A stretch of DNA of 64,000 bases from Trichosphaerium sp. ATCC 40318 (taxonomy: Eukaryota > Protista > Tubulinea): the NCBI GenBank assembly GCA_038496445.1, contig JALMLS010000631.1, positions 1 to 64,000 of the forward strand, read 5' to 3'. The notes beneath the pieces are model-generated. The model saw nothing but the letters and a program-made list of their open reading frames with translations, did not search any database and was not told where the DNA came from. The translations under genes and the position numbers were made by a program. Positions 1 through 61,146 of the stretch are shown piece after piece. Numbering within the stretch: the first letter of the stretch is position 1; the number at the start of each line of letters is the position of its first letter.

Positions 1-130
1 AAGAAAAACCTCTCAAGTCGGACCATAAACGGATAGCTCTAAACTTAAAGGTACCAATCAATAATTTTACACCTGAAAAAAGATACAAAGTCAAAATAGA
101 AAGGTTGTACCTCAGAAATGTAAGTAACAA

Positions 131-1059
131 CAGGGCTGAAACTAAACAAGGCTTTGCCTTAAATATGAAGGCATTTTTTTAAAATCAGGCATTGATGGCA
201 AAAATCAGGCATGCAAAAATGGCAATGCCTGATTTTGCAAAGGCAATGGCAAAAAAGGCAAAAATCAGGCATTGAAATAAGGCTTTGTTGGGCAATGCCT
301 TAATTATTGCAATGCCTTGTTTTTTTTAGGCAATGCCTGCCCTAGTTTTTTTATGCATTGCCAGCCTTAAATTTACAGGCACCAATTAGGCATTGGTTGT
401 GTACACATTGTACATTAAGGATACATTGGTTTAAGGTAAGTTTCCACCACACCAACACTTCCTAAACATTTTTTTTCATTTACTACTGACGTTTTATATA
501 GACGACGTCACCACTCGCTTAGTATTTTATGGATTCTAACGAAACCACCGCCATTCGAACCGCAGCACCCAAATGCACCTACAACAGGAGTATAGGTACT
601 TTAAACCATTTTTCCAGTCCGCGAAAATTATACCAATAATTTGTTAATTTTTTTTTCTAGCTAAAGGTTTTTTTTCACATGGAGGACATTGAAGTTTTTT
701 GTGTTTTGTGTACTGTACTTTAATAAATGAATCACTATTGTATGCCTATATAAAGCCTTGTTTTATGAGTATATGGTGCCTGGGTTATGCCCAAAAATTG
801 AGGGCAAAAATGCCTTATTGTTGCACTAAAAATGAGGCATTATTGAACCAACAATGCAGGCTATTTTAAGGCTAATTAGTGAACCAGTTGCTTGCTATTT
901 GGCCCAAATATGAGGCTCCAAAGCCCAAAATTACAAGGCAATGCCTCATATTTGCTCATTTTTTTTGGCAAAAACAAGGCAATTTGGTGAAAAATAAGGC
1001 TGTATTTGGTGGCAAAAAAAAGGCTTTTGCAAAAAAAGCCTTATTTAGTTTCAGCCCTG
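131..1059. mobile_element. Non-autonomous TIR DNA element E1 (929 bp), family A, 2-bp TSD AA
   Basis: TIR cagggctgaaactaaacaaggc / gccttatttagtttcagccctg (21 of 22 match). Many AGGCAT/ATGCCT subterminal repeats. Flanked aa|...|aa. No transposase ORF. Confidence 0.9.
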
Positions 1060-1398
1060 AAATACCTCAAAAAACTACTTGCCTGAAATAACTTAAAGGA
1101 GCACATCGGACCTGAGGTTATAGATATATATCACAAAGCATTAAACGAAGGATACGATGAAATTGCGGATATTTATTGGAATTTATTTTTAGAAAAATTT
1201 ACCAGTAAACTTTATACTTACCTCGAATCTAAAATAGGACATAAATCCAAGCTTAGAGTAAACCTAACAGAAAAAATCATCAAAAACTTTTCTCTAAACA
1301 ATGCTAAAACGTTATTTAACATAATTAAACATGGTAGGTATCTTATTAGTTCAAAAATCAACATTACACAAGGAAAAAAGATATTAGAGAATGCGCTA

Positions 1399-2458
1399 CA
1401 GGTCTAAAAAAATATACCAGTTTTTTTGGTATATACCACTTTTATACCACTTTTTTATACCAGTTTTTCATGGTATATACCAAAAAAAGTGGTATATTTT
1501 GACTGAAATATACCAAAAAAAGAGGTATATTGACAAAATATACCAAAAATATACCAAAAAAAACAGGTATAAAAACAGAAAATATACCACTTTTTTTCAC
1601 CAGAAAAAAAAAAATATACCACTTTTTTATACCACTTTTTTTAGGTATATACCAGTTATATACCACTTTTTTATACCAGTTTTTCATGGTATATACCACT
1701 CTTATATACCACTTTATGCCTACTTATGGTACACCTGCAATTCCAGAAAATACACTTTATTTAATACACAGTTTGTGAGTTACAAGTTTTGGACAATGTC
1801 CACTACAGTTACATTACTATGGGCGTCTGGAAAATTCGTCCATCTCCATGAGCTTGCTGTGCCTACTGTAAAAACATGCTGCGCACCTAATGAAAGTGGT
1901 CCCACCCGAATCTATCAATTACTAAGGCCTACGGAGGTCGGTTAATGTATATCAAACGAAAATAAAATAACACTTTGTCTGGTACCCACGAACGTCTGTA
2001 TAATACCTGCAATATAGTTTCCTTAATGTTGGTACTGGAATCAGGTCCTGCGGTTTGAATGAGCTTGGTTTGGTTAGATTCTATGATATACTAAGGTCCC
2101 TACGCACCGTTCAATGTATGACGTCTATGATCGTTCAACAAGAAAACCCATTACCAAAAAGCTCCTTAATGACCTTCTTGAAGCATACCATAAAAGTGGT
2201 ATATACCAATAAAAAGGTGGTATATACCACATATCATAAAAAAGTGGTATATACCACTTTATATACCATTTTTAGAAGGTCTCATTATGTGAATGAAAAG
2301 TGGTATATACCACTTCCATATACCACTTTTTTATTCACTTAATTTCTAAAAAAAGTGGTATTTCAAAATGGTATATACCAGTTCATATACTATTTTGTTG
2401 AAAAAAGTGGTATATACCATAAAAAAACTGGTATATACCACTTTAATTTTTAGACCTG
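1399..2458. mobile_element. Non-autonomous TIR DNA element E2 (1060 bp), family B, 2-bp TSD TA
   Basis: TIR caggtctaaaaa / tttttagacctg. Dense ATATACCA(C)/GTGGTATAT repeat arms at ~1410-1715 and ~2185-2445. Flanked ta|...|ta. Confidence 0.9.
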
Positions 2459-3029
2459 TACTTCACAAAGTCAATAAAATACTTAAAGGCTTTGAAGATA
2501 CTATACCTCTAAGCAACAAAGAATATATAGATTTCGCAAATGAAGCAATGAAAAAACTGAAAGTGGTCAAAGATCAAATTAGGAAGGAAATAAGAAACAA
2601 ACACGTTGACAACATGATCGAAAAAATAGTCAATAGTAAATCAAGATCTCTCTTTCGCAGATACAGAAAACTCAGAAACCTCAAAACTAACGATTTCCCT
2701 CAATCATTCACTAGAGAAGATGGTACAGAAGTCGCATCAAATGAAGAAATGAATGAAGAAATTAAACATAAATGGGGTACGGTTTTTAAAGATAGCGAGG
2801 TACAAAACGCAGAAGAACTTATACCTTTTGACATGGAACCTAAAACTAACAACGAAGAATTTGACATAGACGCAATTGATGAACATACTTTCAAAAACGC
2901 TGCCAAACGAATAGCTTCATTTAAAGCACCAGGGTTCTCCAAAATTGACGCTAAAATATATAAAACGCTTCCTAATGAAGCAATCACCATGCTCACTAAC
3001 CTTATGAAATATTGCTTTAAAATGTCTTT

Positions 3030-4067
3030 CAGGGCTGAAACTCAACAAGGCATTTTTGGACAATGCCTAGGCATTTTCATCAAATAATGCCTTATTTTTT
3101 ACAAAAATGCCTAGTTTTTGCTTCATTCAAAAAGGCAAATACAGGGCAATGCCTTATTTTTTGCTCCAAAAATGCCTTATATTTGATGAAAAATGCTTGC
3201 ATCTGGTACACAAGATTGCAATGGTTTTGCCTGCATATTTTTAGGAATTATGCCCTTCAAATTAGGGCATAACTCATGCATCAATGCCTTATTTTGAAGG
3301 CAAAAAGTAAGCATTATCATAGTCTACAGTGCCTAATAAACCAGGGCATTTTCAGGTAATAACACAACTATTTATTTTATAATACAGTACACATACAATA
3401 CACAAAACTTCTAAGTCCACATTTGAAAAAACCTTAAAGAAAATATGAGATGGTGTAGAAAAAAAAAAAAAAAAAACTTACCTTGTAGTGTTAGAATTCC
3501 GCGGTCCTGGAAATATCGCGGAGTTCACTCCTACTACTGTTGTAGGTGAAATAGAGTGCCGCGGTTCGTTTGGCGGTGGTTTCGTCTAATTTCATGAATT
3601 ACTAAGAGCGCTAGGTGCCTATCTATATAAAACGTCAGTAGGTGATGTGAAAAAAAAAGTGTAAAAGTTGTTTGACTGTTACTTACCTTAAACCACTTCC
3701 TTAATGTGATCAGTCCTATGATATAGTATAGGCAATGCCTTATATATGAATTAAAATACAAGGCATATATTGCTTAAAAAAATAAGGCATAATAAAGGCA
3801 TAAAGTACTTGCAATACAGGGCATTACTTGATTTTATGCAATGCCAAAAAATGCAATACAAGGCATTACCTGATTTTATGCAATGCCAAAAGATGCCCAA
3901 AAATGCCTGGTATTAATGTTTTTTTGATGAAGGCATTGCCTTTTTGTAAAAATGCCTTATTTTATTGGGCATTGCCAAATGCAAATGCCTTGATTTTGCC
4001 ATCTAATGCCAAATGTTAGAAATATGCATCATTTTTTAAGGCAATGCCTAGCTGAGTTTCAGCCCTG
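3030..4067. mobile_element. Non-autonomous TIR DNA element E3 (1038 bp), family A, inverted relative to E1, 2-bp TSD TT
   Basis: TIR cagggctgaaactca / tgagtttcagccctg. AGGCAT/ATGCCT repeats. The internal core is a reverse-complement homolog of the E1 core. Flanked tt|...|tt. Confidence 0.9.
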
Positions 4068-7000
4068 TTTATTCCTGAGAAATGGAAAAACAGTACCACT
4101 ATAATGCTAGTAAAAAACGGTGATCCAACAGATGCGTTAAATTTTAGACCAATATCACTACTCAACTCATTGTATAAAATTTATTCTAGAATACTTACAG
4201 ACGTATTAGAATCAGCTAATAAAAATAACAATCTGTTAAGTAAAAACCAATACGGTTTTGTTAAAGGTAAATCAATTCATATGGCACATAAGAAATTTAT
4301 CTCGGCGGTAAGAGAAGCTAATCATAAAGGTAAGGATCTATATGCGTTATTTATAGATTTAAGAAAGGCGTACGATTCAATTCCACATTGGGCTATTGAC
4401 AATATCTTCAAATGGCATGGTTTCAGTAAAAGTATAAGAAAAGTGTTGGTATCGCTTTTTAAAGAAATCAAGACAACGATTAAAACTCAGGTGGGTGAAG
4501 CAGAAATTAGAATTAATAGAGGTACTAGACAAGGAGATATCATATCACCAATGATTTGGGATTTCTTTATTAACTCGCTTGTTCTTAAAATGGAAGAAAG
4601 TAAGTTAGGTTTCAAATGCGCTGACGGTAAAATTGTTACAGTAATCGCTTACGCAGACGACTTAGTGATTTTAGCGGAGAACTTAGAGGATTTACATAAA
4701 CTATATGACCTACTTCTTTCTTTTTGCTCCTTTTATGACATTAATATTAACACAGAGAAATCATCATTGCTCACTAACAAAGAAGAATTAGCTGAAGAAA
4801 TCTACCATAAACCATTGCGCTGGAAAGGTAGTCAAATCCCAATAGGAAAACCAAATGAAACGTATAAATACCTTGGTATACTAATTAACATGAATCTAGA
4901 CTTTAAGGAACATTTTACCAAATTAGGAAGCTTCTTTAAGACGGTAATTAATTTAGTTAACACTAATTACTTTACTACAGCCCAAAAAGTCAGGATTATT
5001 AATCAAGTAGCAATAGCTAAAGTTAGATTTACACAAAGCGTCATCAACATCCCTAAAGTATGGCTAAAAAAATGGGATAACTTAGCAACAAGAATTATAA
5101 AGCGTAAAGTTAAAATACAAACAAATACACATAATGAGAGAGTTCAATCGAGCAACGTAGGTTTTGGTCTTTTATCATTAAAGAATACTCAAACACAGGC
5201 ATTTGTAAAGACAGCTCTCAAAGATAATCTCAACTGTAAAGAAGGTGCAATAGGTAGTGAATCAGTAGCCTCAGACTTTAAAACGTGTAAAAGGCTCCTT
5301 AATAATACTAACTACAATATTAAATACATAGGTTTGATTCGTAAAACGTCTTTACTAGCAAAACCCATGAGTGTGCCAACTTTTAATAGCATTACTACAA
5401 AAGTCAATGGTACGTCAATTATTGCAACGGATGGTAGCGTTATAGATGGAGTTGCATACAGTGGCATAGCGTTGTCAATCAACAAAAACAAATGGTTGAA
5501 ATTTCATACTTTATTTCATGACGACTCAAATGGGGCCGAACTAGAAGCTATAAAAATGGCAGCTCGTATCACACCCAAAGAGTTACCTATTATTATAGTT
5601 ACTGACTCTTTAAATTCTAAAAGATGGATCAAACAATTCGACAAATGGCTCCCTATTAAAAAATTCAAGAGTCCTTACGCACACACTCTAGAACGCATAA
5701 ATGACCTCATAAATAATAGAATTGGTACTACTGACATTATATGGTATCCGAGTCATACTCTGGAAAGTAGCTCTAAAAAGGTAGCAGCACTTAAAGCTTC
5801 TAAACACATCACTAGAAAGTACTCAGCCCAATTAGTTCCATGGTGTATAGCTTTAAACGCATACACAGATAAGATTGCATCTGATAAGTGCTATAAAGCA
5901 GAAGGTAGATGCTTACTAGGTACTAATCTACACCCTATAAGAACAGGTAACTACTGTCTTGTTAATTCAAAAGACTCTCCTACATACCATGACCCGTGGA
6001 AAATTCTTAAAATAGCTGCGGAAGAAAAAAAAATTAAGTTCATTAACAATGTTTCTAGTAATCTAGGTAGAAATAGATTAAATCTAGATATGGCTCGATC
6101 CAAGATTTCTTATTTCAACATGCAAAATGACAGAATAGTAGATTTTGCATTCAGAGTCAAGCGACATGCATTGTTTCTCAACAGTGTGAAATTCCACAGA
6201 CAACCAAAAGTCTGTGACTCTCTATGGGCTAGAAGAACTAAAATTAATTATCCTAACCCATTTTGTTCTATGTGTCAAGATGGATCTCATGAAACCTTCC
6301 AACATTTCGTTAGATGTAAAAACAATCCGTTCGATATCAGAACGCATCTGTTTTATCACATTGCCAGAATATACACTGAAACTATTGACGAAGAATTCCC
6401 AGACTCTGAGGAAAAATTCCGTAAGTTCAATTTTTATTCACTTATCAGAAATAAAACTAAAGATAACTACTTTGTTTCGAACTCCTTCCAACTCAGATAC
6501 AAAGTTAAACACGCTATGTTCTGCGTTCTTCAAGCAGGTAGAAATATAGATTCGCTTATGGAAGAGGAATATTGGGTTGATAAGTATATTGGAAAAAATT
6601 TATTGGGTGCAGTGGTGGAAAAATTTATTGACAATTACGGTTTTATGGGCGTCACACATAATTTATCTTTCCGTGAAGCACAAGGATGGGTCACAGAAGA
6701 ATTGATCAGCAAGATAAGAGAAACTTTTGCCATTAATACACCCAAAGCTAGGTTCATGGCACAACGTATTAACCGTATTTATATTGCATTATTATATAGA
6801 AGATATATATCATGTTGTAAGAAAGATATCACATATAAGAAATCGGTGGGCGCTTACCTAGGGCCGAGGGTTTTTGCATTGGCTAACGACAATATTAGAA
6901 ATATCTTAGGTCTTTAGTATCTTGAAATTTCTCCTCTTTCTTTCTTTTACATTTGTTTCTATTCTTACCGGGCTTCCCTTTTATAGTTGAAGTTAGTTTA

Positions 7001-7344
7001 TGGAGGAGTTAGGTTAGAAGCTTACGTTATAGCATGGTTCACTATTATAAGTTTATTGGCATAATGGTCTCACACTGTTTAGAAACTCTAGGTCACCTCG
7101 TCTCCTTTTCTGTATATTGGTATTCTTTCTTGTTTTTTTCCCCCTTTTTTTTTTATCAGTCGCCCATAATAACCTGGCTGCGTCTAGAAGTTCAGAGTTT
7201 ACCTCTTGTAGTGTCCTAGTGGACCAGTAGAACTTAGGTTTTCCGAAAGGAAGACCGTTGACGTTAAATAAAATAATAATAATAATTTCGAAGTCTTTAT
7301 TTCTTTTGAACTATCTTTTGACTTTTCATCCATTCTAAACAATC

Positions 7345-9405
7345 ATGAGCGCATCTTCAAGCCCTATTTTAATGATACCAGGACCAATCGAGGTCGATCC
7401 ACAAGTTCTCGAAGCGCTAGGTACGTTTATGTCATTTTCACTAAAAAACAAATGACAAGTCGCCTAGGAAGGCGCCCAGAGAGCCACGTATCGCCTGTAT
7501 TCATTAAAATCTTCTCTGAAGTGTTAATAAACCTAAGGTACTGGTAGTTTACGCTGACTGTAGCTTATGATGTATAGAAAGGTATTTTGCTGTAAAAAAG
7601 GGCAACCGTTTGTAATTTCAGCCTCAGGTACATTAAAAACTCAGTAAACATCGTCTAATAAACGAATAGGCACCTTAGGATGGGATGCAACTGTAGTTAA
7701 CTTGTTTGAACAAGTATGTATTTAGCTATTTTACAAAAAGTGTTTGTAACTTTTTCTTTCCAAAAAGGACAGCGACGCTCTTATCATTAGCTCAGGATAC
7801 GTACGTGACCTTTTTTAAAGCGGTTTTTTTGTTGTACTGACAGTTACAAAATAGTTCGGTGACCGATTTTTGAACACGTGCGTGAACGTATAATCACGTT
7901 TGTTGTTTTGTGCCAACAAAGTATCGTTAGGTTCAAATCATACAATGTAAATGCAGATATAGTCCAAGGACCTGCTGGAACTTTTCCATCAATGGAAGAT
8001 ATAAAGGTACGAGTTGTTTTAATTGTTCAAGTGATCATTAGGTAAAAACAACGCTAACACTGTAAATAGAAAGCTCTATCGAGTAAGAAGTATCGTGGCG
8101 TTACGATAACCCATGTTGATACCAGTACTGGAGTACTAGCGGGTAAACCTTTACACGTGAATCACGCTTAACAAAGTTTAGATGTGAAATCCGTTGCTGC
8201 AGTTGTAAAAGAAGTATCACCAGATACATTAATTATAGTTGATGGCGTCTGTGCATCAGGTAATCATACTTTAAGATACATGAAATTCTAAAATTTAATT
8301 AGCTGGAGAAGAGTTGCGAATGGATGAATGGGGTATCGATTACGTAATGACTGCAAGCCAGAAAGCTCTTGGCGTTCCTCCAGGTAAGTTTTCTTAAAAA
8401 CTTTCGTAACGTCTTTTAACCTTAAATCGAAGGTCTATCTGTTTCAATGGCATCAGAACGTGCCATAGTACGTCTTGCATATAAACCAACGTCTTTTTAG
8501 CGTTTTAATATTATCAACAGGCTACACACGGAGCAAGAGTAAAAAAGGTACCTTTTGCATTTTTTTAATTTTTTTTTGTTGGTTGTAATTTTGTTTTCTA
8601 AAATAGGTTCCTAATTACTATGCTGACTGGCAAAACTGGCTTCCAATTATGAAAGCATACGAGTCACTGAAACCATCATATTTTGCTACACCTCCAGTTA
8701 ATCTCATCACTGCGTTGCACGTGTCATTGACCCAAATGCTCGCCGATGGTATGTGTACAATTATCATCAGCAAACTCCATTAGTAGACTACTGAATTATT
8801 AATCCTATTTGTCAAGGTGGTATGGAAGCAAACTGGAGCAAACACAAGAAGGTATGTAACATAATTGTCATTCTCTTATTTACCGAGCGTAGGCAGCTGC
8901 AGCTTTCAAATCAGGTATACCACAACACGCCTTAGAAAGGATGTAATTGTTTTTACTCGTCCTAATATTGTTATGTAGCTGTAAAAGCTCTCGGATTAGG
9001 TACAGTACCAGTCGAATCGTACTTGGAAGCAAATACGCTTTCTTGTGTACGCTTCCCTGAAGGCATAAATGGTATGGAAAGTTTAGAAGAGTTACTATTA
9101 TTGTGTTACGACTAAACATATCTCTAGCTGGTTCTCTTCTACCAAAAATTAAAGCCCAGGGCGTCATTCTTGCAGGAGGACTACACAAAGACATAAAAGC
9201 AGAATACTTCAGAGTTGGTCACATGTCAATATCAGCAACAAGACCAGCACTTGGTCATTTGTATGTCGTTACCATCATTTACAAGATTAACTTGTTTTTA
9301 AGGACCAAAACAGTTGAAGCAATTGAAACAGCACTCGCAGAATGTAACTACGAGTTTAAAAAAGGAGCTGGTATCGAAGCCTTCGCAAATGCAATGAAAT
9401 GTTAG
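7345..9405 (+). CDS. AGXT: Alanine--glyoxylate / serine--pyruvate aminotransferase (class V PLP), ~20 short introns
   Basis: Exon peptides [69 protein letters not shown]. Confidence 0.9.
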
Positions 9406-10620
9406 ACACTCCAATTTTGACACATTGAAATCAGAAAAAACTCAGAAAGTTGCTCGACAAATATTTTTCAGATTGAAAAAAAATAAACTTGGTCCAGAAG
9501 CGTTTTTTTAACACTACGTTCTATTATATATTATATTACAGTACGGATAACAAACAAAAAAAGGTCAATGCGATAGTACGACGAATATTCCGGAAAGTCG
9601 TTTTTTTGTAATTCACCCTTAAAAAAGCAAGTATTTCAATGGTACCAGTTTACCTAAACGTAAAAAAGTAAGTAAAAAAGTCATATCCATTTTCGATTTT
9701 TTAGTGAAAAGGGTGATGATGCCACAAAGCGTACCGCTTTCTTTTTTTTTCTATACAAAGCGATGACGTTACACAAGAAGTGTTTCACCATCTATGAGGA
9801 AAACTCTACTCATAAACATATGTCGAGAAGAGTGTGGTAATTTTGTGAGTATATTCCTTGCTATAGGTGTACTACGAGACTTTATTGACCTAAAAAAAGA
9901 CAAAGTCAGCATCAAGACGCACTGGGATGGTAATAGCAAAAAAATTTCTTGGGCGCGCACTGATGGCGCGGTCTAACTGCTGGGTTCGTTGCGTTTTGAG
10001 TATTCTGTATTTTTTGTTCTCCGTCATTACTTTCTTCTTGTGCTATTTCTATGCGTGATTGCGCACCACCTGGGCCCTTTAAAATACTATTCAGTACGAA
10101 AAACTCGTAATTTCGTAATAACTCTTTCGAAAACAACTACGTTTTATCTTTTACTTCGTAATTGGCGTTGGAAAAAGCGATAAAAACCATTTTGTGGCCG
10201 TAACGCCGATAAAGTTTCGCTGTAGCGTATTTTTTTGTTTTTACCTGAGACGAGCTTTGAAGTCGTTCCATTTGTATAATTTATGATATGAAACGCCTTG
10301 TAGTACTGCTTACGCTTGTCTAATACGTAAATAGAAAATTATACGGTTTAGTGAGAAATCGTTTGACTTTGTCGGTATCTTCGAATGTTACCCAAACCAA
10401 CCTTTTCGTTTATTGAACATGAGCGTACAAGGCCTTGAGTTATTTGGATTGTTGGAATAACGTAATGTCGTAACAAACTGTGTTTTCGCTAGAAGAAGCT
10501 TTCAGTTCACACTCGGCTGATCATACCCCCGAGCGCCATAAGGCGCACTTCCAGAACAATTACAAGCGACTTACGTAATGTACATTTTTATTACAGTGAG
10601 TGGTTTTTATATTTGTGCGG

Positions 10621-16600: not shown

Positions 16601-19600
16601 ACAGGAGGGGTAGGAGGTACTGGATCGCCAAGAGCATCAGCAAGACTGTCCAAGTCTGCAGAGTCCATACCGTCTATCATTGTGGTAATCATAGCAGAAT
16701 CCATGCGCTGCAATGGCGGTTTAAACTTTCGTGGTTGTGTTGCTTTCGGTAGCTGGAACTTTGGAGGTGATTGTGTCCTTGGTGGAGGGAACTTTGGTGG
16801 CGCTTGTGTCCTTGGTGGAGGAAACTTTGGTGGCGCTTGTTTTGGTTGCATATATTTCGGCGTAGGTACCTTTTTGACAGGAGCTACTACCTTGGGTTGT
16901 GGAACAACTGGTGGCATTATATACACCTTTGGTGCTGCAACTACTGGTTGTTTTAAAGCTCTTGGGAATTTCTTTGGACCCTTTGGTGGGGCATACTTCT
17001 TCGGTGCCAATTTTGGGCGTGACATCATAAATTGTGGTTTCTTTGCTGACACAGGTCTGAAGTTTGGAGGCATAACAACTTTTTTAGGTCCAATCTTTGT
17101 ACCTAATTGATTAGGTGCAGACACCTTTACCGGAGCTGGAGGGCGTGGAACAAATGTACTTTTCTTTGCAGCGAATTTTTGAGGCGCTACGCCAAACTTG
17201 ATTGATGGTGGTTGAATGTGCGCGTTCATTTTCTTCGGTGCGAATTTTGGAGGCGCTACACCAAACTTGATTGATGGTGGTTGAATGTGTGCATTCATTT
17301 TCTTCGGTGCGAATTTTGGAGGCGCTACGCCAAACTTGATTGATGGTGGTTGAATGTGCGCGTTCATTTTCTTCGGTGCGAACTTTGGAGGTCCCACAGC
17401 CAGTTTGATTGAAGGTGGAGCAACTGACATTGGCCTCTTCTTCGGTGTAAATGTTGGTGGAGCTGGTACGTTCATCTTCTTCAAACCAGAGGCGATCGTG
17501 TTGGTCTTTTTAAAAGACGCTGGTGGTGTAAATGTTGGAGGAGGTGGAATGAATCCCTTCTTAACACCAAATTTAATACCACTAACTCCCTTTGGCCGGA
17601 AACCTTTAGGAGGGCCACCTCTAGCGTTGAATTTAAGAGATTGTGGAGCACCCTTTGGTCGGAAACCTTTAGGAGGTCCTCCTTTAGCGTTAAACTTGAG
17701 AGATACGCCTTTTGGTTGAAATCCTTTCTTTGCTCCCTTGCCAAATGTTTTCAACTTGAGAGAACGTGCACCATACTTTCCTCCTCTTCCTAATGAAGCC
17801 ATCTTCATCGACCTAGATCCAAACTTTCCTTTGCCTTTAAGTCCTTTACGACCTGGTCGAGCTACCACAAAGCCTTTCTTTGAAGCTGGTGCGCTTTGGT
17901 TACGCTGTAACGATCCAGGCATCTTGGGCACACCCGATACTGAATTTGCGTGATGAAACTCCTTGTTAAGAGGCGGAGGCGTAAAATTGGGAGGCGTTGT
18001 CACAGATGATGCAGTAATGACAGGCTTCGGTTGTTCAGGTGTATGAGCAGGCGGTGGTGGTGTATGGTCTGGAACAGCAACAACAGCAGGTGGTGGCGGC
18101 ATGTGAGAAGGAGCATTTGGCACATGGTTTGGTGGAGGTATACTAGATGTACGACCTACCGAAGGTGCTTCAGAACTTGAATCATCGTATGATGCGCTGC
18201 TCATGTTTGATCTCAGAGTATCCCTCTGTTTATCCTTCTTATTTGACTTTTCTGGTCTTGGTGTCTTTGTACGAGGAGTTTTGAGCTGTTTCATCACCAC
18301 AGTGGCCTTAAAATTATAGTGTTAACAATTTGTAATACAAAGTTAGCGTACCATGTTAGCAATAGAGTACTTATTCAACATTGATGCTTCTGACTTTAAT
18401 TTTTTTCCTTTGTACTCTAGGTAGTACAAGGACACATTCTCAGGAGGAAGATTCGCCTTGCCTATCACCTCATCTATAATCTCGTGTACTACTGTGTCCA
18501 CACCAAGCTTTACGGTCTTAATAACATCAACTTCTTTGACTTGTACATGTATACGACAGAATATACCGCCACCTCGAGGAGATATTGCACGAGGTGTTTT
18601 TTTCTCCTTGCCCTTCTTTTCCTTGTCTTTTTTCTTTTCACCTTTCTTGTTTTTGTCAATTGATACAATTCCCTTTATGGGTGGAACCTTTAACGACATT
18701 TGCTCAGCCATTGACGCTTCTATTTGTCATTAGAAAATATTATTATACGACACTAACGCACCCTCTTCTTGTTTACGCTGCAAAGCTTCTAGTTCTTCTG
18801 CCTCTTTTTCCGCTTCTTTTTGACGAAGCGATTTTATCCACTCCTGGCGTTGCTCTTCTTTTTCCCTCTTTTCTTCAAGCTCTTTTTGTTTGCGCTTATT
18901 ATCTACTTTACGGCGCTCTCTATCAATACGACGTTGGAATTGTAGTTTCTGAGAAGGCAACATCTGGGACATGTCCACTTCTTCGAGTTTCTGTAGTTCG
19001 GTCTTTTCCTCTGGGAATGGATTGACCCAACTACGCGCCATAGTTACCCTGTTATAATAGTAAATCTGTCCACCAGGTGCTGTGGCTTTTGACCAATCTT
19101 CAGCGGAACCAAGTTGCTATTTTCATTAGCAGGCATGCAAAAACTGATTAATTTTACCTCTGGTGTCAAATCAATTTCTTGTGCTTTATCAACACCTTTA
19201 GAAGGCGCCGAGGTGGCTCGTTGCACTACTTTTGGTGTGGGCGCATCCATTTTGACTGGCTTTGGTGTTAAAGAAGGTGGCGGCTTGTGCCATTGTCCAA
19301 ACTGTGCAGCTTTCTTCTTTGCAGGAGAAGCACGTTTACCGAATGGCTTGCGTGGCATGGTTCGAGCTCGCGGATTACGCTTCTTCTTGCTTGACTTCTT
19401 TGGCCGATTTTTTACCCCTGATGGGATTGAAGAAGGTGGAGGAATATCTAAATTGCCCATACTAGTACTAACTGGTGGGCCACCAATTGAAGGTTTTCGC
19501 GTTTTCTCTAGTTTGTTATTAATAAAGTGACAAACAAGTTTACGAACGTACTGGCGCGCGCAGATTTGGGACGCTTTTTTAAACAATCTGGTTTGTCCCA

Positions 19601-31640: not shown

Positions 31641-34600
31641 TCACATAAAAAAATCGTACAGTGGTACATTTTCGTCCTCATTAAGTGGCACAATATCGTA
31701 TTCCTCAAAATCTATCTCTGTATCATCTCCACCAATACCGACTGTATTTTTCATAAAGTTTCTAAACCTTCAAAAGAAATAAGTCACGTGCTCTATAGCC
31801 GCATAAAAAATGTTGATTTTATAAAGTAGATGCTTTTCATACCTTTCGCTCATTTTGTATGCCACAGCTACAGCAACAATTATTGCAATGAGAATAACAG
31901 CGATGAATGATGTAGTGAAAATAAATATTTGACGCCCAGAGTAGACAGCAGTTGGCACAATTTGACTTGAAGGCTCTAGTGTTGCAGTAGGACTAACAGT
32001 AGTACTAACAGCAGGACTACTAAATGCCACAGGTTGGACTGTGGTAGGCGGGACGCCTCCAGAGGTAGGAGTTCCTGTCTGAGCACAACTGAGAAGAATT
32101 TCACAATTGAAAGACTCCGGACACTGGTTTTGAAAAGTATCCATGGTGTTTATATACATCTGGATACAAATAGTTAGCTGAATGGGTTTCTTCCGAGGAT
32201 TATACCTGTATAGCGGCTACATTGCTTGGTTTAAAGCATGACGGTGGTAAACAAAAATGAGTGCGAACATAAGCCGTTATTGGTAGGAGCACATTTGTAG
32301 ACTGGACGTGAGCGAAAGCCTAAAATACAAAAGATATTTTGATGAGAAAGAGAAGCAAGAATTGGCGTTCATACGTTACAATAATGACCATTTGCAGATT
32401 CACAGGCGCTTTCGAAACGTTTTTTGTTGTCAGTGCACGATAGTGAGACGTTAGTCTTCCCTGCAACTATAGAGATGACATTGTGTAAGTATGCAATGTT
32501 TCTTACTGAAACAACAACTTACGTGCTTGTGTAATAATCTCTTGTCGTTGTGAGGTTACACAAGTTGTTAACTCTTCTCCATATGTCTTATAGAACGAGT
32601 TATATTGGGTGTTCCAAAGAAAGGAAGGTCTAAACGTACCTGTATTTCATGTTTTAATCCAGCATTATCAATCATTGCACGCAGATTAGTTCCTACAAAG
32701 ATATGTGTGAGTACTTCTATTGTAAAAAAGGATGGCTTACCACAAGGTTCTGTCACGTGAGGAAAGTTAGGATTGGCCGTAGTTGGAGAAACGGGAGAAT
32801 TAGAAGAAGCTATAAATACTTAGTATGAGAATTAATTAAGTTGATTGTACGTGTGAGAATAAAGAACACGCTCACATATGCAGGTGTTGCAGTAGCTGGT
32901 GGCACAGTTAACGTCTTTTCAACAGGTAGATAACCTACACAATTAAATTATACTTAAATAACAAGTTCTATTAAGTACCTTGTGCATCTGCTCTGAGAGT
33001 ATATTCTCCAGGTAGTAGTACCCGAAAGAACTCGCCACTAACTTAAATATTTGTAGTTAAGTATTGTAATGGAATGATTTTTACAAACCTGATGTTTTAG
33101 TTATGTGTGTATTTCCAATTAGTGTCAGAGCAACGTCTTTCATGAATGTCCCATCAGCAGTTCTAACTGTACCTCTGACGCCTCTATAAGCCTACGTAGG
33201 AATATTATTGTGAGCATTGATTTAAAACAAGTGGCATGAGCAGTATACTTACTGTCTCAATGAAATTCAACAGTGACTCCTCATTATCATCGCTAAAAAT
33301 ATAAGTGATGTAGTTGGTCAAATCACCACGTACAGCAGCTGAGGTGGCGTTTGATTACTATCAGTTAACCCTATACTGATGTCCATACAGTCACTCTTGC
33401 GGTACATCCACTAACATTAATGTAAACAAAAATGAGAGTAATGCAAACAGGTACGTCTGAGAAACTATCCGTGACTGGTGCCCAGTTTGCCCCATTTTCC
33501 GTAGTTTTATGTCCCAGAATTTGTTCCGTCATTTTAGGATTCCGTGTGGCATACTCATTGGATATGTATCTGATGTACAATTGTTTGAGTGGAGGTAGTT
33601 AAAGTGCAACTGTACTCACTTGAACATGCTGTCATCAGGAGCTTCATTGTATCTATGATCACCATCTGAACATGTTGGACAATCCATGTATGGATATAAG
33701 ATAATATCACCACTTTTAAAACTTGCAGATAACACATAGTTATGAGTATTCACCTCAAGAAAATGTTACTTCACAAAAAACTTCAAAATCAATTTTTGGG
33801 AGTACCAAGTCAATAATGTGTTGTGTCTCTACTTCACTATTTTGTGACACAAAATTACTTTCCAAGTTCACACCATTTGCATTTCCACTAGTTCCTAAAT
33901 CGAAGCCTTGCTTGACGTAAGCATATCTGACAATACTTTAAGACAGGTTAGTACCATCAGGATTAACAGCTGGAATGATATGAATGTGAGCAGCTCTTAG
34001 AATATCACGGACTCTCTCATCGTCGTCGTAGTCAGCACGTGATACCAAACGCTTAGCGAACTCTACAAGCATTTCTCGGCCCAAATTATCAGTGCCTTAA
34101 AGTACGATTAATTTAATGATTTTTTTGGTTGCTTATCACGTGTACCGTTCAAGTTTGCGACAAATAGAACATAAGGTTTTTGTTTTTTGTCTACTGGATC
34201 ATCAGGTTCAGTGCCTGTTATCTCTATACACCATATATCATTACCATTAACACTCTTACCTGTTATGTGCGTTAGAAAGGGAACAAGGAGTAAGGTAAAC
34301 ATGCCTATGGATTCCAATTTGGTTTGGGATGGGTATCTAGCATTCAATTCAACCAAAGCGGTGTGTATTTCCTCGTTCGTGCGTTGACTATCCTGTTGAG
34401 TGTCAAAAGTTGACTACAAAAGTAGACACTTACTTGATGACGTTTTACAGTTTCCACCTTCCACTTACGCCTCAATGAACGTACAGCGCGTTGTGATGCT
34501 AGTACGTGCACGTATGCTTTGTTCTTATTTAATATTGTAAACGAACGCTTGTTTTGATCAAAAAGTAAGCTCCGATCGTGTTTGGGTGCGTATATTCTGT

Positions 34601-47853: not shown

Positions 47854-48000
47854 GTATCTGTCACGAAAAACATAACATAAAAAAACTCAAAAATATTATG
47901 GCCACAAAACGTTGACGTTTTGTATTCACAATTTTTTCATAAAACGATATCTTTTTAGCTGTTTTTTTACTCATAAAACGTTAACGTTTTACCTTTTTTC

Positions 48001-48223
48001 TTTGGTCATAAAACGTTAACGTTTTGTAGGAGGATTGGATGAGTTTTTCTACCTCAAATCATCATTACTTTAAGACAATTCCAAAACATTATGTTTTGAA
48101 GCAACCTTTGATGATTTGTACTAGCATTGGCAATACATTTGGTGTTTTTGTAAAAACAATGACGTTTTGAGGTAGAAAAACTCATCCAATCCTCCTACAA
48201 AACGTTAACGTTTTATGACCAAA
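48001..48223. repeat. Perfect 58-bp inverted repeat with 107-bp spacer (MITE or hairpin RNA)
   Basis: 48001-48058 is the exact reverse complement of 48166-48223. It contains the palindrome AAAACGTTAACGTTTT, with further copies at ~47906 and ~47975. Confidence 0.85.
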
Positions 48224-48725
48224 AAAATAAAAAGAGAATATTGTGAGAAATGTAGGTTTAAACGTTAAAATTTTCCTAAAATCCCTATCATCAATTTTTT
48301 TTGTAACCAGTTTTTTTTTTGAAGCTGTTGTTCACGCACCTTCAACAATATTTCTCAGTTGCCTAATTTGGCTTCCAAATTTTCAGACTTGTTTTATTGG
48401 ATGGATAGGACATACACTATAGTAGCATTCTTTTACAAGCCTCAAAACTTTCATAACTAATGTAATGTTGTTTGTGAACAAAACTCAATTGTGGAATAAA
48501 CGTTTATTGGGCTAAAATTTTCTAAAGGGCAAACCCTTAAATGTTTCCACATTTGCCCAGACTTCTGTTCTTCTAATTTACATCATTCACAGAACTTTTT
48601 GTTTGTTGCCACAGGCACTGTATCAGGAGCTGGTCTTTACTGTGAATTGTTTCTACAACAAAGACATAAATATTTTTTGCATGTGATGCTCAGTAGACTA
48701 AGTAGTACATACCTGTTTTGATTGA

Positions 48726-49549
48726 TTAATGGCTAAAGTAAATCTTTACCTTTTGTTGAACTTTGACCTTGCATAAAGGACATTCTGATAATAAGGTAAC
48801 ACAACTATCACATACACATGCATGACCACATGGGACCAAAACAAAAGAGATATTATCATCCATACAAACACAACACTCTTTAATCTTGTTCCCACCTTCC
48901 TCCAATAATAATCTTTCCTACAACGGGTAAGTAAAAGAAAAAGAAAAACCAAGAAGCAGACACAAAACAAAAAAAAGAAAGCTAAGAACGAAGTGCTTTT
49001 CTTCACTGTACCTTTTGCTTGTCTAGTGATTGTAAGGCTGAAGTATGTAGTGCTTTTGCAACTTCTATCTCATCTATAGTCTTATAGGTTGCTGTACCAT
49101 TGATTCGAGAGAGTTGCGTAAGTAGTTCTGTGTTTTCTGTTTTCAGCTTTATGACTTGTGCTTCTAGCCCTGAAATTGCTTCTAAACTACTCTGTTGCTT
49201 CTTTTTTTGGTAAGAATCAATCTTTTCTATTATTTCGATTCTGAAATCTGCATCTAGAGCGTCAATTGTTTTTTGACGTTTACGTGGCGGTGCTTGTGGC
49301 GCTTCCTCTTTATCCTATGTTGTTTAGGCGAAAAAACACTTGTCAACCAAATGTAAAGCTCGTAAAACAGCGAGAGAGATAAATATGGGCTGGAGCGAAT
49401 TGTGGGATGCGTACTTCCTCTAAATCAATCTCTAGTAGCTAAATGAGTCAGAAAGTTGCGGTATTGAAAAGAATACATACCTTGCTTCGTTTACGTTTTT
49501 GCTCGTTTTCTCTTGCCCGGCGCCTCCAGGTTTGCTTTGTCCGCGCCAT
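48726..49549 (-). CDS. Coiled-coil + C-terminal C3HC4 RING protein with histone-H3-like N-terminus (MARTKQT)
   Basis: ATG at 49549: MARTKQTWRRRAREN. Last exon ECCVCMDDNISFVLVPCGHACVCDSCVTLLSECPLCKVKVQQKVKIYFSH*. Confidence 0.8.
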
Positions 49550-57879: not shown

Positions 57880-59059
57880 TAAAATTTGATTGTTGAATTT
57901 TTGTTCACTTGCATTGACGCTCTATAAGAGTAGCTTGTATTTAATAGTTGACTTCAATGAGGGCTCGACGGTTTGCAAACCAAGGCACATTAACCTTATA
58001 TTTAGCCTACATGTGGTTAATTACTTATGTTTCCAAGTATCTGAACTAACCTTGTACAGTTGTACAGGATCATACGATGTGATGCCATTTTCATTGAATT
58101 GTCTTCCATCCTTTTATTCAGGTAAGGATGAGTTTAAGAATGACATTGTGACATACCGCGGGTGTAAAGTTGCGAACAATTGTTGGTCTTAATAAAAACC
58201 CTCGCAACGGAAGAACTCTGTTGCTTCGCAAGTAATTGTGAATTGAAAAACCTATATTCAATATCTTCATCGTCACTTCTCTAACAGTTTCTAAAGTCTC
58301 AGTCGCTATCTATAAACATGTTTTTAGTAAACCGATAGCCTAGCAACTTTTCTTACTTCAGACACGTACCTCTTGTACTAAACCACCCCAAGGCTCGCCA
58401 TTTTGTCGACTGATTTTAAACCATCTCACTCGTCTAAAGGGAATCAAAGCAGAACTCTTAGTATCTGAAACAGCAAGAAAATAATCTAGATATTGCTTTG
58501 ATTCTGTACCAATAAAGTCAGACTCTTTTGCAAACTGAACTCCACTAATCAATCTACCAACAATGTACTCTTTCTGTTTTACATCTTGCACAATGACAGC
58601 GTCTCCTATTCTCATCTTGAAGAACAAGGCACTAGTTTCGTTTGTTACCAACAATAACAATGCATTGTACAATTTCTCACTTTGCAGTAACATGATAGAA
58701 ACGGTTTTCATTTGGCATCAGTTCAAGAATCATTTTAACTCTTGTGTTATCAGGAGCCATCCTTGCATATGATTAAGGGCTAGTATGAAGTACAATAAAG
58801 AACGAACGCGAGCCTGTCCATGATTTCAATAATGTCTAAGGACTCGGGGTCGTAGAGAAGGCGATATGAAACTACGTAAGAGTGAGTCTTGTACAAGTTG
58901 TATAAAAGCGAACTCAAGTTGTTGTGCTTATTGTCAGAGTTATACGATTGGTTCTTACCCTTTTGTTTTAAATGCTTCATAAGCTTCTCGTGTAGACAGT
59001 GGTGAAGGAAAAACTTTCCATAGCGGTGGCGCTGCTTGTTGTGGTATTCTTTGTCTCAT
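57880..59059 (-). pseudogene. Paralog A of the PUA/EVE-like domain gene pair; apparent +1 frameshift in exon 2
   Basis: PPLWKVFPSP..YEAFKTKG and FFKMRIGDAVIV..GRL..PFRRVRW match paralog B with the same intron positions. One extra base at ~58855 relative to B. The 3' end is approximate. Confidence 0.55.
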
Positions 59060-59329: not shown

Positions 59330-61146
59330 TCATTTTTTTACATGATTGCTCATGGTCATACTTTGCTTGTATAGATTATCAAGGTTCTCCTTTTCTTGTT
59401 TAATCAGTTGCCTCAGTCTCTGTATCTTTAAAATACTTGCACGTTTTTTATCTTCAATTGCTTTCTCATCTTGAGCTTTACCACGTGATCGAAAGAGTTT
59501 TTCTAAAGTTGTTACACGAATCAAAAAGAATAGTGTTTAAAACCTTTTTTTATAGGGCGTATATCATCTGGTATGACAGATTGTGATGCCATCTCACGTT
59601 GTTTAGGCGATATAAGACTAATATCTGAAGATTGGTAGTAACCAGATGTGCCGTTATACTCTTCACTATCGTCTTCTCCTGTCAAGTCAATCTCAATTTC
59701 TGCATATCACAAAAAGTGTGAGTTGATAACTAAAGATTGGAATGTATTACCATCATCTGTATCTTTGCTCTGATACTTGGCTGTCTTAGCGTGTGGATCT
59801 ACTTTGAACTTCCTTTCTTTTTTAATGAAAGGTGTTTGTGTTGCTTCGTCTGAATTGGTACTAGGAGGTCGGTTTGGAGTGTCTATTTTTGTGGCATCAG
59901 CAAGAAATGATTTTGAAACAATTGTCCCCTCACCGTTGTCAATGTTAAGTGGATTATTTTGTTGTATGTTTCGACGATTGGCAAACCAAGGCACATTTAT
60001 TCCCTTTCTATACTACGCTGGTTAAATGGTGTCATAAAGCAAAGATAGGCCTAATTATGGGTGCTGATTACCTTGTACATCTGTGCAAGATTATACGTTG
60101 TAATGCCATTCTCACTGAAATCTCTTCCATCCTTTTTATGAGGAGTAAGGATTTAAAGATAGTATTTGACCATACCTCAAGAGTAAAGTTGCGTACTATT
60201 GACGGATTTAATATGAACCGCCTGTATGTTTTCTTATTTGCCAAGTAATTGTGGAGTGCAGGTCCCCTATTAAACATTCTTCTCTCCACACTATCAACTG
60301 TGTCTTGAGTCTCAATTGCTATCTAAAATTCACTTAAAACTACTCAATGTCTATTCATCCTGTACCGCTTCAAATAACCCACCCCAAGGATTACCATTTA
60401 GGGCATTGCCTTTGGATATTTTAAACCATTTTACTCGTCTGAAAGGAAGCATTTCATATCCACAAATCTCGGTATCTGAAACAGTAAGAAAATAGTCATC
60501 GAGATTATTTTGATTTTGTACCAATAAAGTCAGACTCTTTTGCATACTCAACCCCACCAGTCACTCTACCAACCATATATTCCTTGTCTTTTCGATTTTG
60601 TATGATAATAGCATCTCCAAGTTTAATCCTGAAGAACAAAGCGCTAAGTATTTTGTTAACCCCTTGTCATGAACAACAATAAATACCCACAAAAAAAAAA
60701 CAAAAAAAAGAGACATTATTAACTCACTTCATAGCTGTGTAGTAGTTACGATTTTCACCTGGTGCTAGTCTAGTCATCATTCCGACTCTTTTACCGTCCT
60801 CGACTGACCTTAATTCATGGTTATTAAAGATCCTGTGTGGTTAAAAGAACGAACACAAGTTTGTCCATAATTTCTATAATGCCAAGTGTTTCTTCACCCC
60901 AAAAAGGTGCCATGAAACTAAATACACCATGTTAGCTCAAGAATACGTAGTGTGAACAGAATTAATCTACTTAATGTACCCCTTGGTTTTAAAAGCTTCG
61001 TATACTTCTCGTACCGCATGTGGCGGCGGAAAGACTTTCCACAGCGGCGGGTTTGTCTCTTTTTTCTTTCTTTTAGCCCTTTTTGTACTCTTGGCACATG
61101 GTGCTAGACGTTTTCGCTTTCTGCTCTCGATTATATCTAAGTCCAT
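59330..61146 (-). CDS. Paralog B: putative nuclear protein with PUA/EVE-like domain and C-terminal coiled coil
   Basis: NLS-like RKRKR..KRAKRKK; PPLWKVFPPP..YEAFKTKG|FMAPFW; FFRIKLGDAIII..EYMVGRVTGGVEY..PFRRVKW. Confidence 0.7.

Follow-up and report, generated by a model that had tools for sequence, protein, structure and literature searches.

The window analysed here is the first 64,000 nt of contig JALMLS010000631.1 of Trichosphaerium sp. ATCC 40318, i.e., 64 kb with a GC content of 37.9%. Close to its left end it contains three transposon-like elements of about 1 kb each, designated E1, E2 and E3, which are all inserted into one open reading frame (ORF, 1–6917) of a host retrotransposon, a long interspersed nuclear element (LINE). 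An earlier note on this DNA had proposed that the three elements carry a selected cargo around a common core of 100 nt, either a micropeptide of about 35 residues or a spliced non-coding RNA. The common core and the signs of selection were recovered in the present analysis, which tentatively points to a role of the conserved part at the level of its nucleotides. The elements are the following.

131–1059, plus strand: E1, non-autonomous element with terminal inverted repeats (TIRs), CAGGGCTGAAACT ends, AATGCC/GGCATT arm repeats and the target site duplication (TSD) AA
1399–2458, minus strand: E2, non-autonomous TIR element with CAGGTCTAAAAA ends, TGGTATATACCA arm repeats, TSD TA and two modules
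3030–4067, minus strand: E3, same TIR family as E1, TSD TT

All three start with CAGG and finish with CCTG, and their TIRs are perfect over 12–13 nt, the 13-nt TIRs being common to E1 and E3. Subterminal repeats are numerous, with 14 copies of GGCAT/ATGCC in E1, 27 in E3, and 28 copies of GGTATA/TATACC in E2. Between E1 and E2 the arms show no more similarity than shuffled sequences do, in agreement with the claim that they are unrelated. Hallmarks of the CMCT clade are CA..TG ends and a TSD of 2–5 bp (PMC12730594). CA..TG termini with TIRs, a 2-bp TSD and subterminal arrays were tested on E1–E3 and all were present. Judged by their ends, the feature on which the assignment is based, they are non-autonomous elements of the CMCT type (CACTA/Mirage/Chapaev/Transib/Plavaka) and thus new members of an already known kind of element. 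An autonomous partner with matching ends, which in this clade would encode a DDE transposase with C(2)C and H(3-4)H motifs, is not present in the 64-kb window. Five public runs carry small shares of the region, with contigs aligned to 61–4560. The contigs of three runs match only the elements and never the LINE, mostly with 95 to more than 99% identity and with novel flanks at the element ends, and members of the E1 family are found at other sites in run X5. Because near-identical contigs (98–99%) with new flanks occur in three runs, the element families are young, mobile and present in many copies.

The shared module and the signs of selection on it

The conserved internal part was found once in E1 and E3 and twice in E2, and it was delimited as follows.

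495–617, plus strand: module of E1, TATA-like 8-mer at 495–502, core at 518–617
1996–2118, minus strand: module A of E2, core at 2095–1996, frame open, but with ATG replaced by ATA; the CATTAAGGA (2028–2020) and the GT donor (2006) of unit B lie within the tail of this module
1827–1949, minus strand: module B of E2, core at 1926–1827, 32-codon frame at 1915–1817 with ATA in the window and ATG in run X1
3507–3629, minus strand: module of E3, core at 3606–3507, 34-codon ORF at 3595–3491

The three cores that had been described, at 518–617 (+), 1827–1926 (−) and 3507–3606 (−), indeed align over 100 nt without gaps, with 46 invariant columns (about 44 had been counted by hand) and with identities of 73 (E1/E3), 55 (E1/E2) and 54 (E2/E3) of 100 positions. 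A fourth core, E2A at 2095–1996 (−), had been missed. It lies 169 nt from the second core of E2 (E2B) and is 63% identical to E1 and 56% to E2B. The module is duplicated within E2, and both copies have the same length despite this divergence. In a shuffle control (n = 300) the best gapless 100-nt identity was 44.6 ± 1.6 with a maximum of 51, compared to 55 for E1/E2 and 63 for E1/E2A. A profile of the four cores revealed no further core in the window. The gapless block also starts 23 nt earlier than had been noted and comprises 123 nt, namely a TATA-like 8-mer (TAYATWRA), 15 nt and the 100-nt core. In each of the four window copies, and in a copy from run X5, the distance from the start of the 8-mer to CTTAGTA is exactly 23 nt, with the intervening bases shifted in E2B; the pattern was derived from the same four copies, and its count in shuffles therefore demonstrates no more than its restriction to these copies.

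Identity is unevenly distributed across the core, with 47–80% at positions 1–69, 33–46% at positions 70–93, where "gapless" means equal length only, and 71–100% at positions 94–100. The invariant positions are clustered in short boxes (TAYATWRA, CTTAGTA, ACCA, CGCAG, ACA and TTTCCAG), some of which are outside the ORF. The module is at least 350 nt away from either element end. A partial fifth core was found in a contig of run X5, which has a depth of 4 and is possibly chimeric or in error. Its head is identical to E1 at 59 of 63 positions, its tail to E2A at 17 of 30, including the GT at positions 90–91, and the sequence upstream to E3 at 18 of 23, while codon 7 is a TAG. If this copy is real, modules would have been exchanged between families, since it is a mosaic of E1, E2A and E3 stretches. 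Copies were not found in viral contigs, prokaryote genomes or phages; two metagenome matches (L001 5344–5412 and L002 13059–13127) turned out to be one bacterial intergenic site that matches the degenerate pattern by chance (10 bits). The idea that the module is a nested short interspersed nuclear element or a Helitron was also discarded, as TSD, tail and free copies are lacking.

Three observations argue for selection on the module. First, its length is conserved. The flanks of E1 and E3 differ by about 33 indel events and 221 mismatches (at least 0.15 indels per mismatch), in contrast to the core, which has none, and across the four cores at least 87 substitutions (parsimony) have occurred with 0 indels. 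At the E1/E3 flank rate the probability of this result is about 6e-6, and it is still 0.02 at a cautious rate of 0.05 indels per substitution; aligners overcall gaps in AT-rich repeats. Second, and independently of this, all 35 CpGs of the three elements are located within 490–622, 1824–2132 and 3500–3633, i.e., in the modules and the stretch between the two modules of E2. The arms contain no CpG in 1,800 nt (about 39 expected), and the element bodies (131–490, 622–1059, 1399–1824, 2132–2458, 3030–3500 and 3633–4067) account for all but one of the seven longest stretches without CpG in the window. The simplest reading would be that the bodies have been methylated and deaminated and that the module is either protected or has CpGs that are needed. 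Third, family copies in other runs retain ATG, Arg, Pro and Ala codons that were lost by the window copies. The variants (ATA to ATG in E2B, found in X1, CAA to CGA in E2A, and CTC to CCC in E3) each agree with the other cores, which indicates that the window copies have decayed relative to their families. Taken at the level of sequence, the absence of indels, the confinement of CpGs and the codons kept in family copies indicate that the module is under constraint, in line with the proposal of a selected cargo.

Transcription signals, introns and the open frame

The modules are embedded in putative small transcription units with the following features.

413–421, plus strand: CATTAAGGA of E1, possibly the start of a first exon of about 22 nt or an upstream element
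436–501, plus strand: predicted intron 1 of E1 (GTAAGT, CTGAC branch, TAG; by sequence consensus only)
529–639, plus strand: 36-codon ORF of E1, beginning at the first ATG of the predicted RNA; purifying signal absent
722–727, plus strand: AATAAA of E1 (motif match)
2163–2171, minus strand: CATTAAGGA ahead of module A in E2, with a candidate intron after it at 2154–2100
1929–2006, minus strand: 78-nt predicted intron that separates module A from module B in E2 (by sequence consensus only)
1756–1761, minus strand: AATAAA of E2 (motif match)
3698–3706, minus strand: CATTAAGGA of E3 (motif match)
3623–3686, minus strand: predicted intron 1 of E3, 64 nt, the last 16 nt of which are kept in a contig of run X3
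3433–3481, minus strand: intron 2 of E3, 49 nt, GTAAGT...AG; one contig of run X3 lacks precisely this segment
3371–3376, minus strand: AATAAA of E3 (motif match)

CATTAAGGA has four matches in the window (0.49 expected), each of them 76–105 nt before a core and 7–14 nt before a GT. It had been stated that every core is preceded by a motif and a splice donor, and both are present, with the refinement that the ACATTAAGGA and the donor ascribed to E2 are located in the tail of E2A, which has a CATTAAGGA of its own at 2171. GGAC, TGTGTA and AATAAA follow the cores in the order that had been given, but the likeness of the 3' part of E2 to those of E1 and E3 is not significant (P 0.42 and 0.07). 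The upstream CATTAAGGA regions were considered as leftovers of further cores, and their similarity was not above shuffles after multiple tests. The core itself was considered as a 96-nt GT-AG intron, but a branch point is absent and the segment is retained in the X3 contig.

The splicing that had been predicted concerned the intron-like segment before each core, while the only evidence of splicing comes from intron 2 of E3, which had been overlooked. The X3 contig has 237 nt, exactly the length of 3353–3432 plus 3482–3638, i.e., of E3 without the 49-nt segment, and run X1 retains this segment. The contig gives a weak indication that intron 2 of E3 may be spliced.

As reported before, only one of the six frames is open in all three original cores. 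It is open in all four cores (column-shuffle P 0.009; 0.05 for any frame; 0.13 for the three original cores only), while the antisense frames contain 3–9 stops. The predicted exons were joined in a script to locate the first ATG, which opens this frame in E1, E3 and the X1-type E2B and yields 36, 34 and 32 residues. The ATG is thus present in three of four families; it is lacking in E2A, and the fifth copy, of low depth, has a stop. A codon model (fixed kappa) peaked at an omega of about 1.0, values of 0.5 and 0.35 being worse by 2.7 and 5.9 log units. Pairwise pN/pS ranged from 0.63 to 1.88, the synonymous fraction was 0.11 (0.12 in shuffled cores), and BLOSUM scores were no better than those of shuffles. 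Only 2 of 32 residues are invariant, compared to 7 invariant third positions. A homologue of the peptide was not found in a profile search of 1.84 billion proteins, in Pfam or in the ESM Atlas, and five matches to the peptide profile among the 1.84 billion proteins were weak matches summed over repeats. An ordinary conserved peptide, one of the two proposed products, is therefore excluded. The same is true for an ordinary transposase fragment, as the cores show neither the indels nor the coding signature of a decaying transposase gene. An omega of about 1 leaves room for a nucleotide constraint that is overlaid on a coding frame.

The host retrotransposon and its neighbourhood

1–6917, plus strand: ORF of the host retrotransposon without long terminal repeats, recognized by Pfam RVT_1 (E 9e-37) and frame arithmetic, with the reverse transcriptase domain within 4104–6917

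The ORF is nearly intact after removal of the inserts, and no relative at E 1e-30 was present among 8,000 candidates scored. When the junctions were joined and stops were counted, the frame was stop-free again at the E2 and E3 sites only if the TSD was 2 bp long. With three insertions in 4 kb, the ORF may be a hot spot or a preferred target. E1 was inserted 9 nt downstream of a GTAAGT in the LINE ORF (120–1098). The sole stop near its junction is the TAA at 1084–1086, upstream of a possible AG; together with the GTAAGT before E1 this suggests that the retrotransposon ORF may contain a short spliceosomal intron.

By eye, a 3' (TAA)n tail of the LINE was recognized at 7268–7287, and directly past it a gene with many introns (7346–9410) that resembles serine-pyruvate/alanine-glyoxylate aminotransferase. 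The window furthermore contains TKL kinase, GH9 and ankyrin genes and represents intron-rich eukaryote DNA; the published Trichosphaerium genome has a GC content of 37.69% and a mean intron length of 75 nt (PMC10521059). A proline-rich ankyrin protein has a 69-nt coding tandem repeat (17160–17447), and the minus strand carries a tandem duplication of a spliced coding segment (58049–58647 and 60070–60658, 69% identity). At 47890–48274 there is a separate foldback element with 85-nt arms (47994–48078 and 48146–48230) and AAAACGTTAACGTTTT palindromes, which is unrelated to E1–E3, lacks the core and contains CpG.

Interpretation and relation to known systems

An omega of about 1 together with seven invariant third positions indicates a constraint on letters rather than on residues, and by this sequence criterion the module is kept for its DNA or RNA letters and their spacing rather than for a conserved protein. 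The explanation that we favor, with a probability of about 40%, is that it is a nucleotide-level module with fixed spacing in a small RNA polymerase II (Pol II) unit, which helps its element in cis. Large autonomous elements of the same genome would move E1–E3 in trans by cut-and-paste, and, by analogy with CACTA biology, the arm repeats, which differ by family, probably serve as arrays to which proteins specific to the respective family bind. Between the arms there would be the small Pol II unit, the conserved part of which is the module of 123–130 nt under nucleotide-level constraint. The module is common to families with unrelated arms; therefore, the factor that reads it at fixed spacing is most likely family-independent and might be the transcription machinery of the host or a protein that the elements have in common. 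A Pol II core promoter with downstream elements is suggested by the TATA-like box, which lies 23 nt ahead of a TTAGT that resembles an initiator. Through the module the element would stay transcribed and free of methylation, and transposase would have access to it. The module would act in cis, because a trans-acting product would be lost by free-riding elements; such a benefit in cis would explain why elements without transposase keep it. The short ORF itself would then be incidental, or required only in so far as its frame is open.

Several points weigh against this explanation. All module tests are based on four full copies and a single partial one. In all three terminal units the sole open frame starts at the first ATG (P ~0.009), which is unexpected for a pure cis element. 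The TATA-like and initiator-like calls are resemblances to consensus sequences, and in E1 and E3 these letters can also be read as branch point and acceptor of intron 1. Methylation is deduced only from the CpG pattern, and CpG-free stretches also exist in host-gene-like DNA (48501–48924, 423 nt; 33543–33901, 358 nt), where they may be consistent with gene-body methylation. As to the transcript, the X3 run is RNA only by guess, its contig keeps 16 nt of intron 1, of which no spliced form was seen, and a 5-nt repeat (AAGGT) is present at both joints of intron 2, so that a DNA deletion could yield an identical product.

The unit might instead encode a fast-evolving peptide of 32–36 residues under mixed purifying and positive selection, for instance an anti-silencing, addiction or family-recognition factor. 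We regard this as rather unlikely, but it has several arguments on its side: the frame that is open in four of four cores, its start at the first ATG in E1, E3 and the X1-type E2B, the ATG, Arg and Pro codons of X1, X3 and X5 copies at places where the window copies deviate, the two X5-only changes, which are both synonymous, and codon 25, which is Leu or Met in all five copies. A precedent for a positively selected protein of a Pack-TIR element exists with Ssk-FB4 (PMC8277862). On the other hand, the values of omega and pN/pS, the near lack of invariant residues and the lack of a homologue do not speak for a peptide, E2A has no ATG and the X5 copy an in-frame TAG (at depth 4), and the invariant boxes upstream of the ATG and the CpG pattern would stay unexplained.

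Non-autonomous elements usually arise by internal deletion of autonomous ones, and the module might hence be a passive relic, i.e., promoter, first intron and 5' and 3' ends of a transposase or cargo gene of autonomous CMCT parents, with constraint acting in the parents only. A promoter remnant would likewise have a fixed spacing, and the window copies do show private decay compared to their families. This explanation appears improbable, because a coding signature and protein matches are lacking, independent deletions would have had to keep the same 3' box at equal distance in unrelated families, and the duplicate modules of E2 have both kept their length. A similarly low probability is given to a shared accessory system of non-autonomous elements. 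Families without transposase would retain, duplicate and exchange a small gene, and its product, either an RNA with a fixed scaffold and a variable 24-nt segment or a fast-evolving peptide of about 34 residues, would actively license their mobility or shield them from methylation.

It is quite improbable that the unit specifies a small RNA with a conserved scaffold of about 69 nt, a variable 24-nt segment as guide or antisense part, and a conserved 3' box, E2 being an array of two units. The profile of conserved, variable but equally long, and again conserved parts would fit, as would the tandem copies of E2 and the apparent exchange of modules. However, neither a shared fold nor an Rfam match supports the structured non-coding RNA that had been proposed. 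Single folds of the cores were no better than those of shuffles, the RNAalifold consensus contained no pairs on the sense strand and reached −1.9 kcal/mol on the other strand, and in a helix scan of five copies the best shared helix had P values of 0.053 and 0.94, all with the low power of four to five copies. Of the stems that had been described to close the TTTCCAG loop in E2 and E3, that of E3 exceeds shuffles (P 0.004), but that of E2B does not (P 0.30); E2A is at 0.33 and E1 has none. Neither Rfam nor ARAGORN gave a match, so that the likeness which the beginning of the core bears by eye to 5S rRNA loop E, tRNA box B, an H/ACA RNA, a ribozyme like that of hepatitis delta virus or a spliced leader RNA is unsupported. 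The variable segments had no match above 16/20 in the 64 kb, did not fit as guides to the LINE or the arms, and an RNA-guided nuclease is not encoded nearby.

Very unlikely, finally, is a functionless Pack-type capture of host DNA (paralogous exons or a small repeat), picked up separately and spread between families by template switching or conversion: Pack-CACTA and Pack-TIR elements do capture and shuffle DNA (PMC6379663, PMC8277862), and the normal CpG content would suit a recent capture and the X5 mosaic an exchange, but there is no free copy in the 64 kb, divergence at fixed length would still require constraint somewhere, and the E1/E3 cores are as diverged as the arms (73% versus 68–73% identity), so that the core must be at least as old as the arms, which have no CpG.

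Non-autonomous DNA transposons are generally considered to require nothing but their ends. A central module that has a fixed length across families with unrelated arms, and that is the sole part with CpGs in elements otherwise free of them, implies a further requirement, either for transposition or for the escape from silencing. As the module is short, multi-copy and has natural variants, this is testable.

The omega-RNA of Fanzor and TnpB systems ends at the right end of the element and takes its guide from the flank. Its loci resemble E1–E3 in that they belong to non-autonomous eukaryotic elements and combine a conserved scaffold with a variable segment behind it. However, the module of E1–E3 occupies a central position, lacks a shared fold and has no nuclease beside it, nor do the elements contain a nuclease ORF; position and structure thus speak against an omega-RNA locus. 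Pack-CACTA and Pack-TIR elements (PMC6379663, PMC8277862) are likewise TIR elements, and their cargo contains introns and is transcribed, as is predicted for E1–E3; in one case, Ssk-FB4, it yields a fast-evolving protein. The cargo of Pack elements varies by element and was recently copied from a host gene that is known, in contrast to the one module that recurs here at fixed length with 54–73% identity and for which no source was found in the 64-kb window or in protein libraries. Similar as well are the non-autonomous CMCT elements (EnSpm/CACTA, Mirage, Plavaka, ESTA, PMC12730594; CMC-NA miniature inverted-repeat transposable elements, PMC6004678), which have the CA..TG ends, short TIRs and 2-bp TSD, no transposase, near-identical copies and subterminal repeat arrays, but the known ends are CAC, TGT or CATCA, whereas those of E1–E3 are CAG. 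In the literature, which was covered incompletely, no report was found of a conserved internal module that is common to families with unrelated arms. The internal enhancer of the P-element, the first exon and TnpA sites of Spm, and the motif arrays of VANDAL/VANC are transposon systems that act in cis or against silencing, and TET-carrying CMCT elements exist as well (PMC12730594). The likeness to all of these is a functional analogy only, in that non-coding internal DNA and motif arrays favor transposition or the loss of methylation; the sites of the P-element, Spm and VANDAL are family-specific or short, unlike the module of E1–E3, which is common to families.

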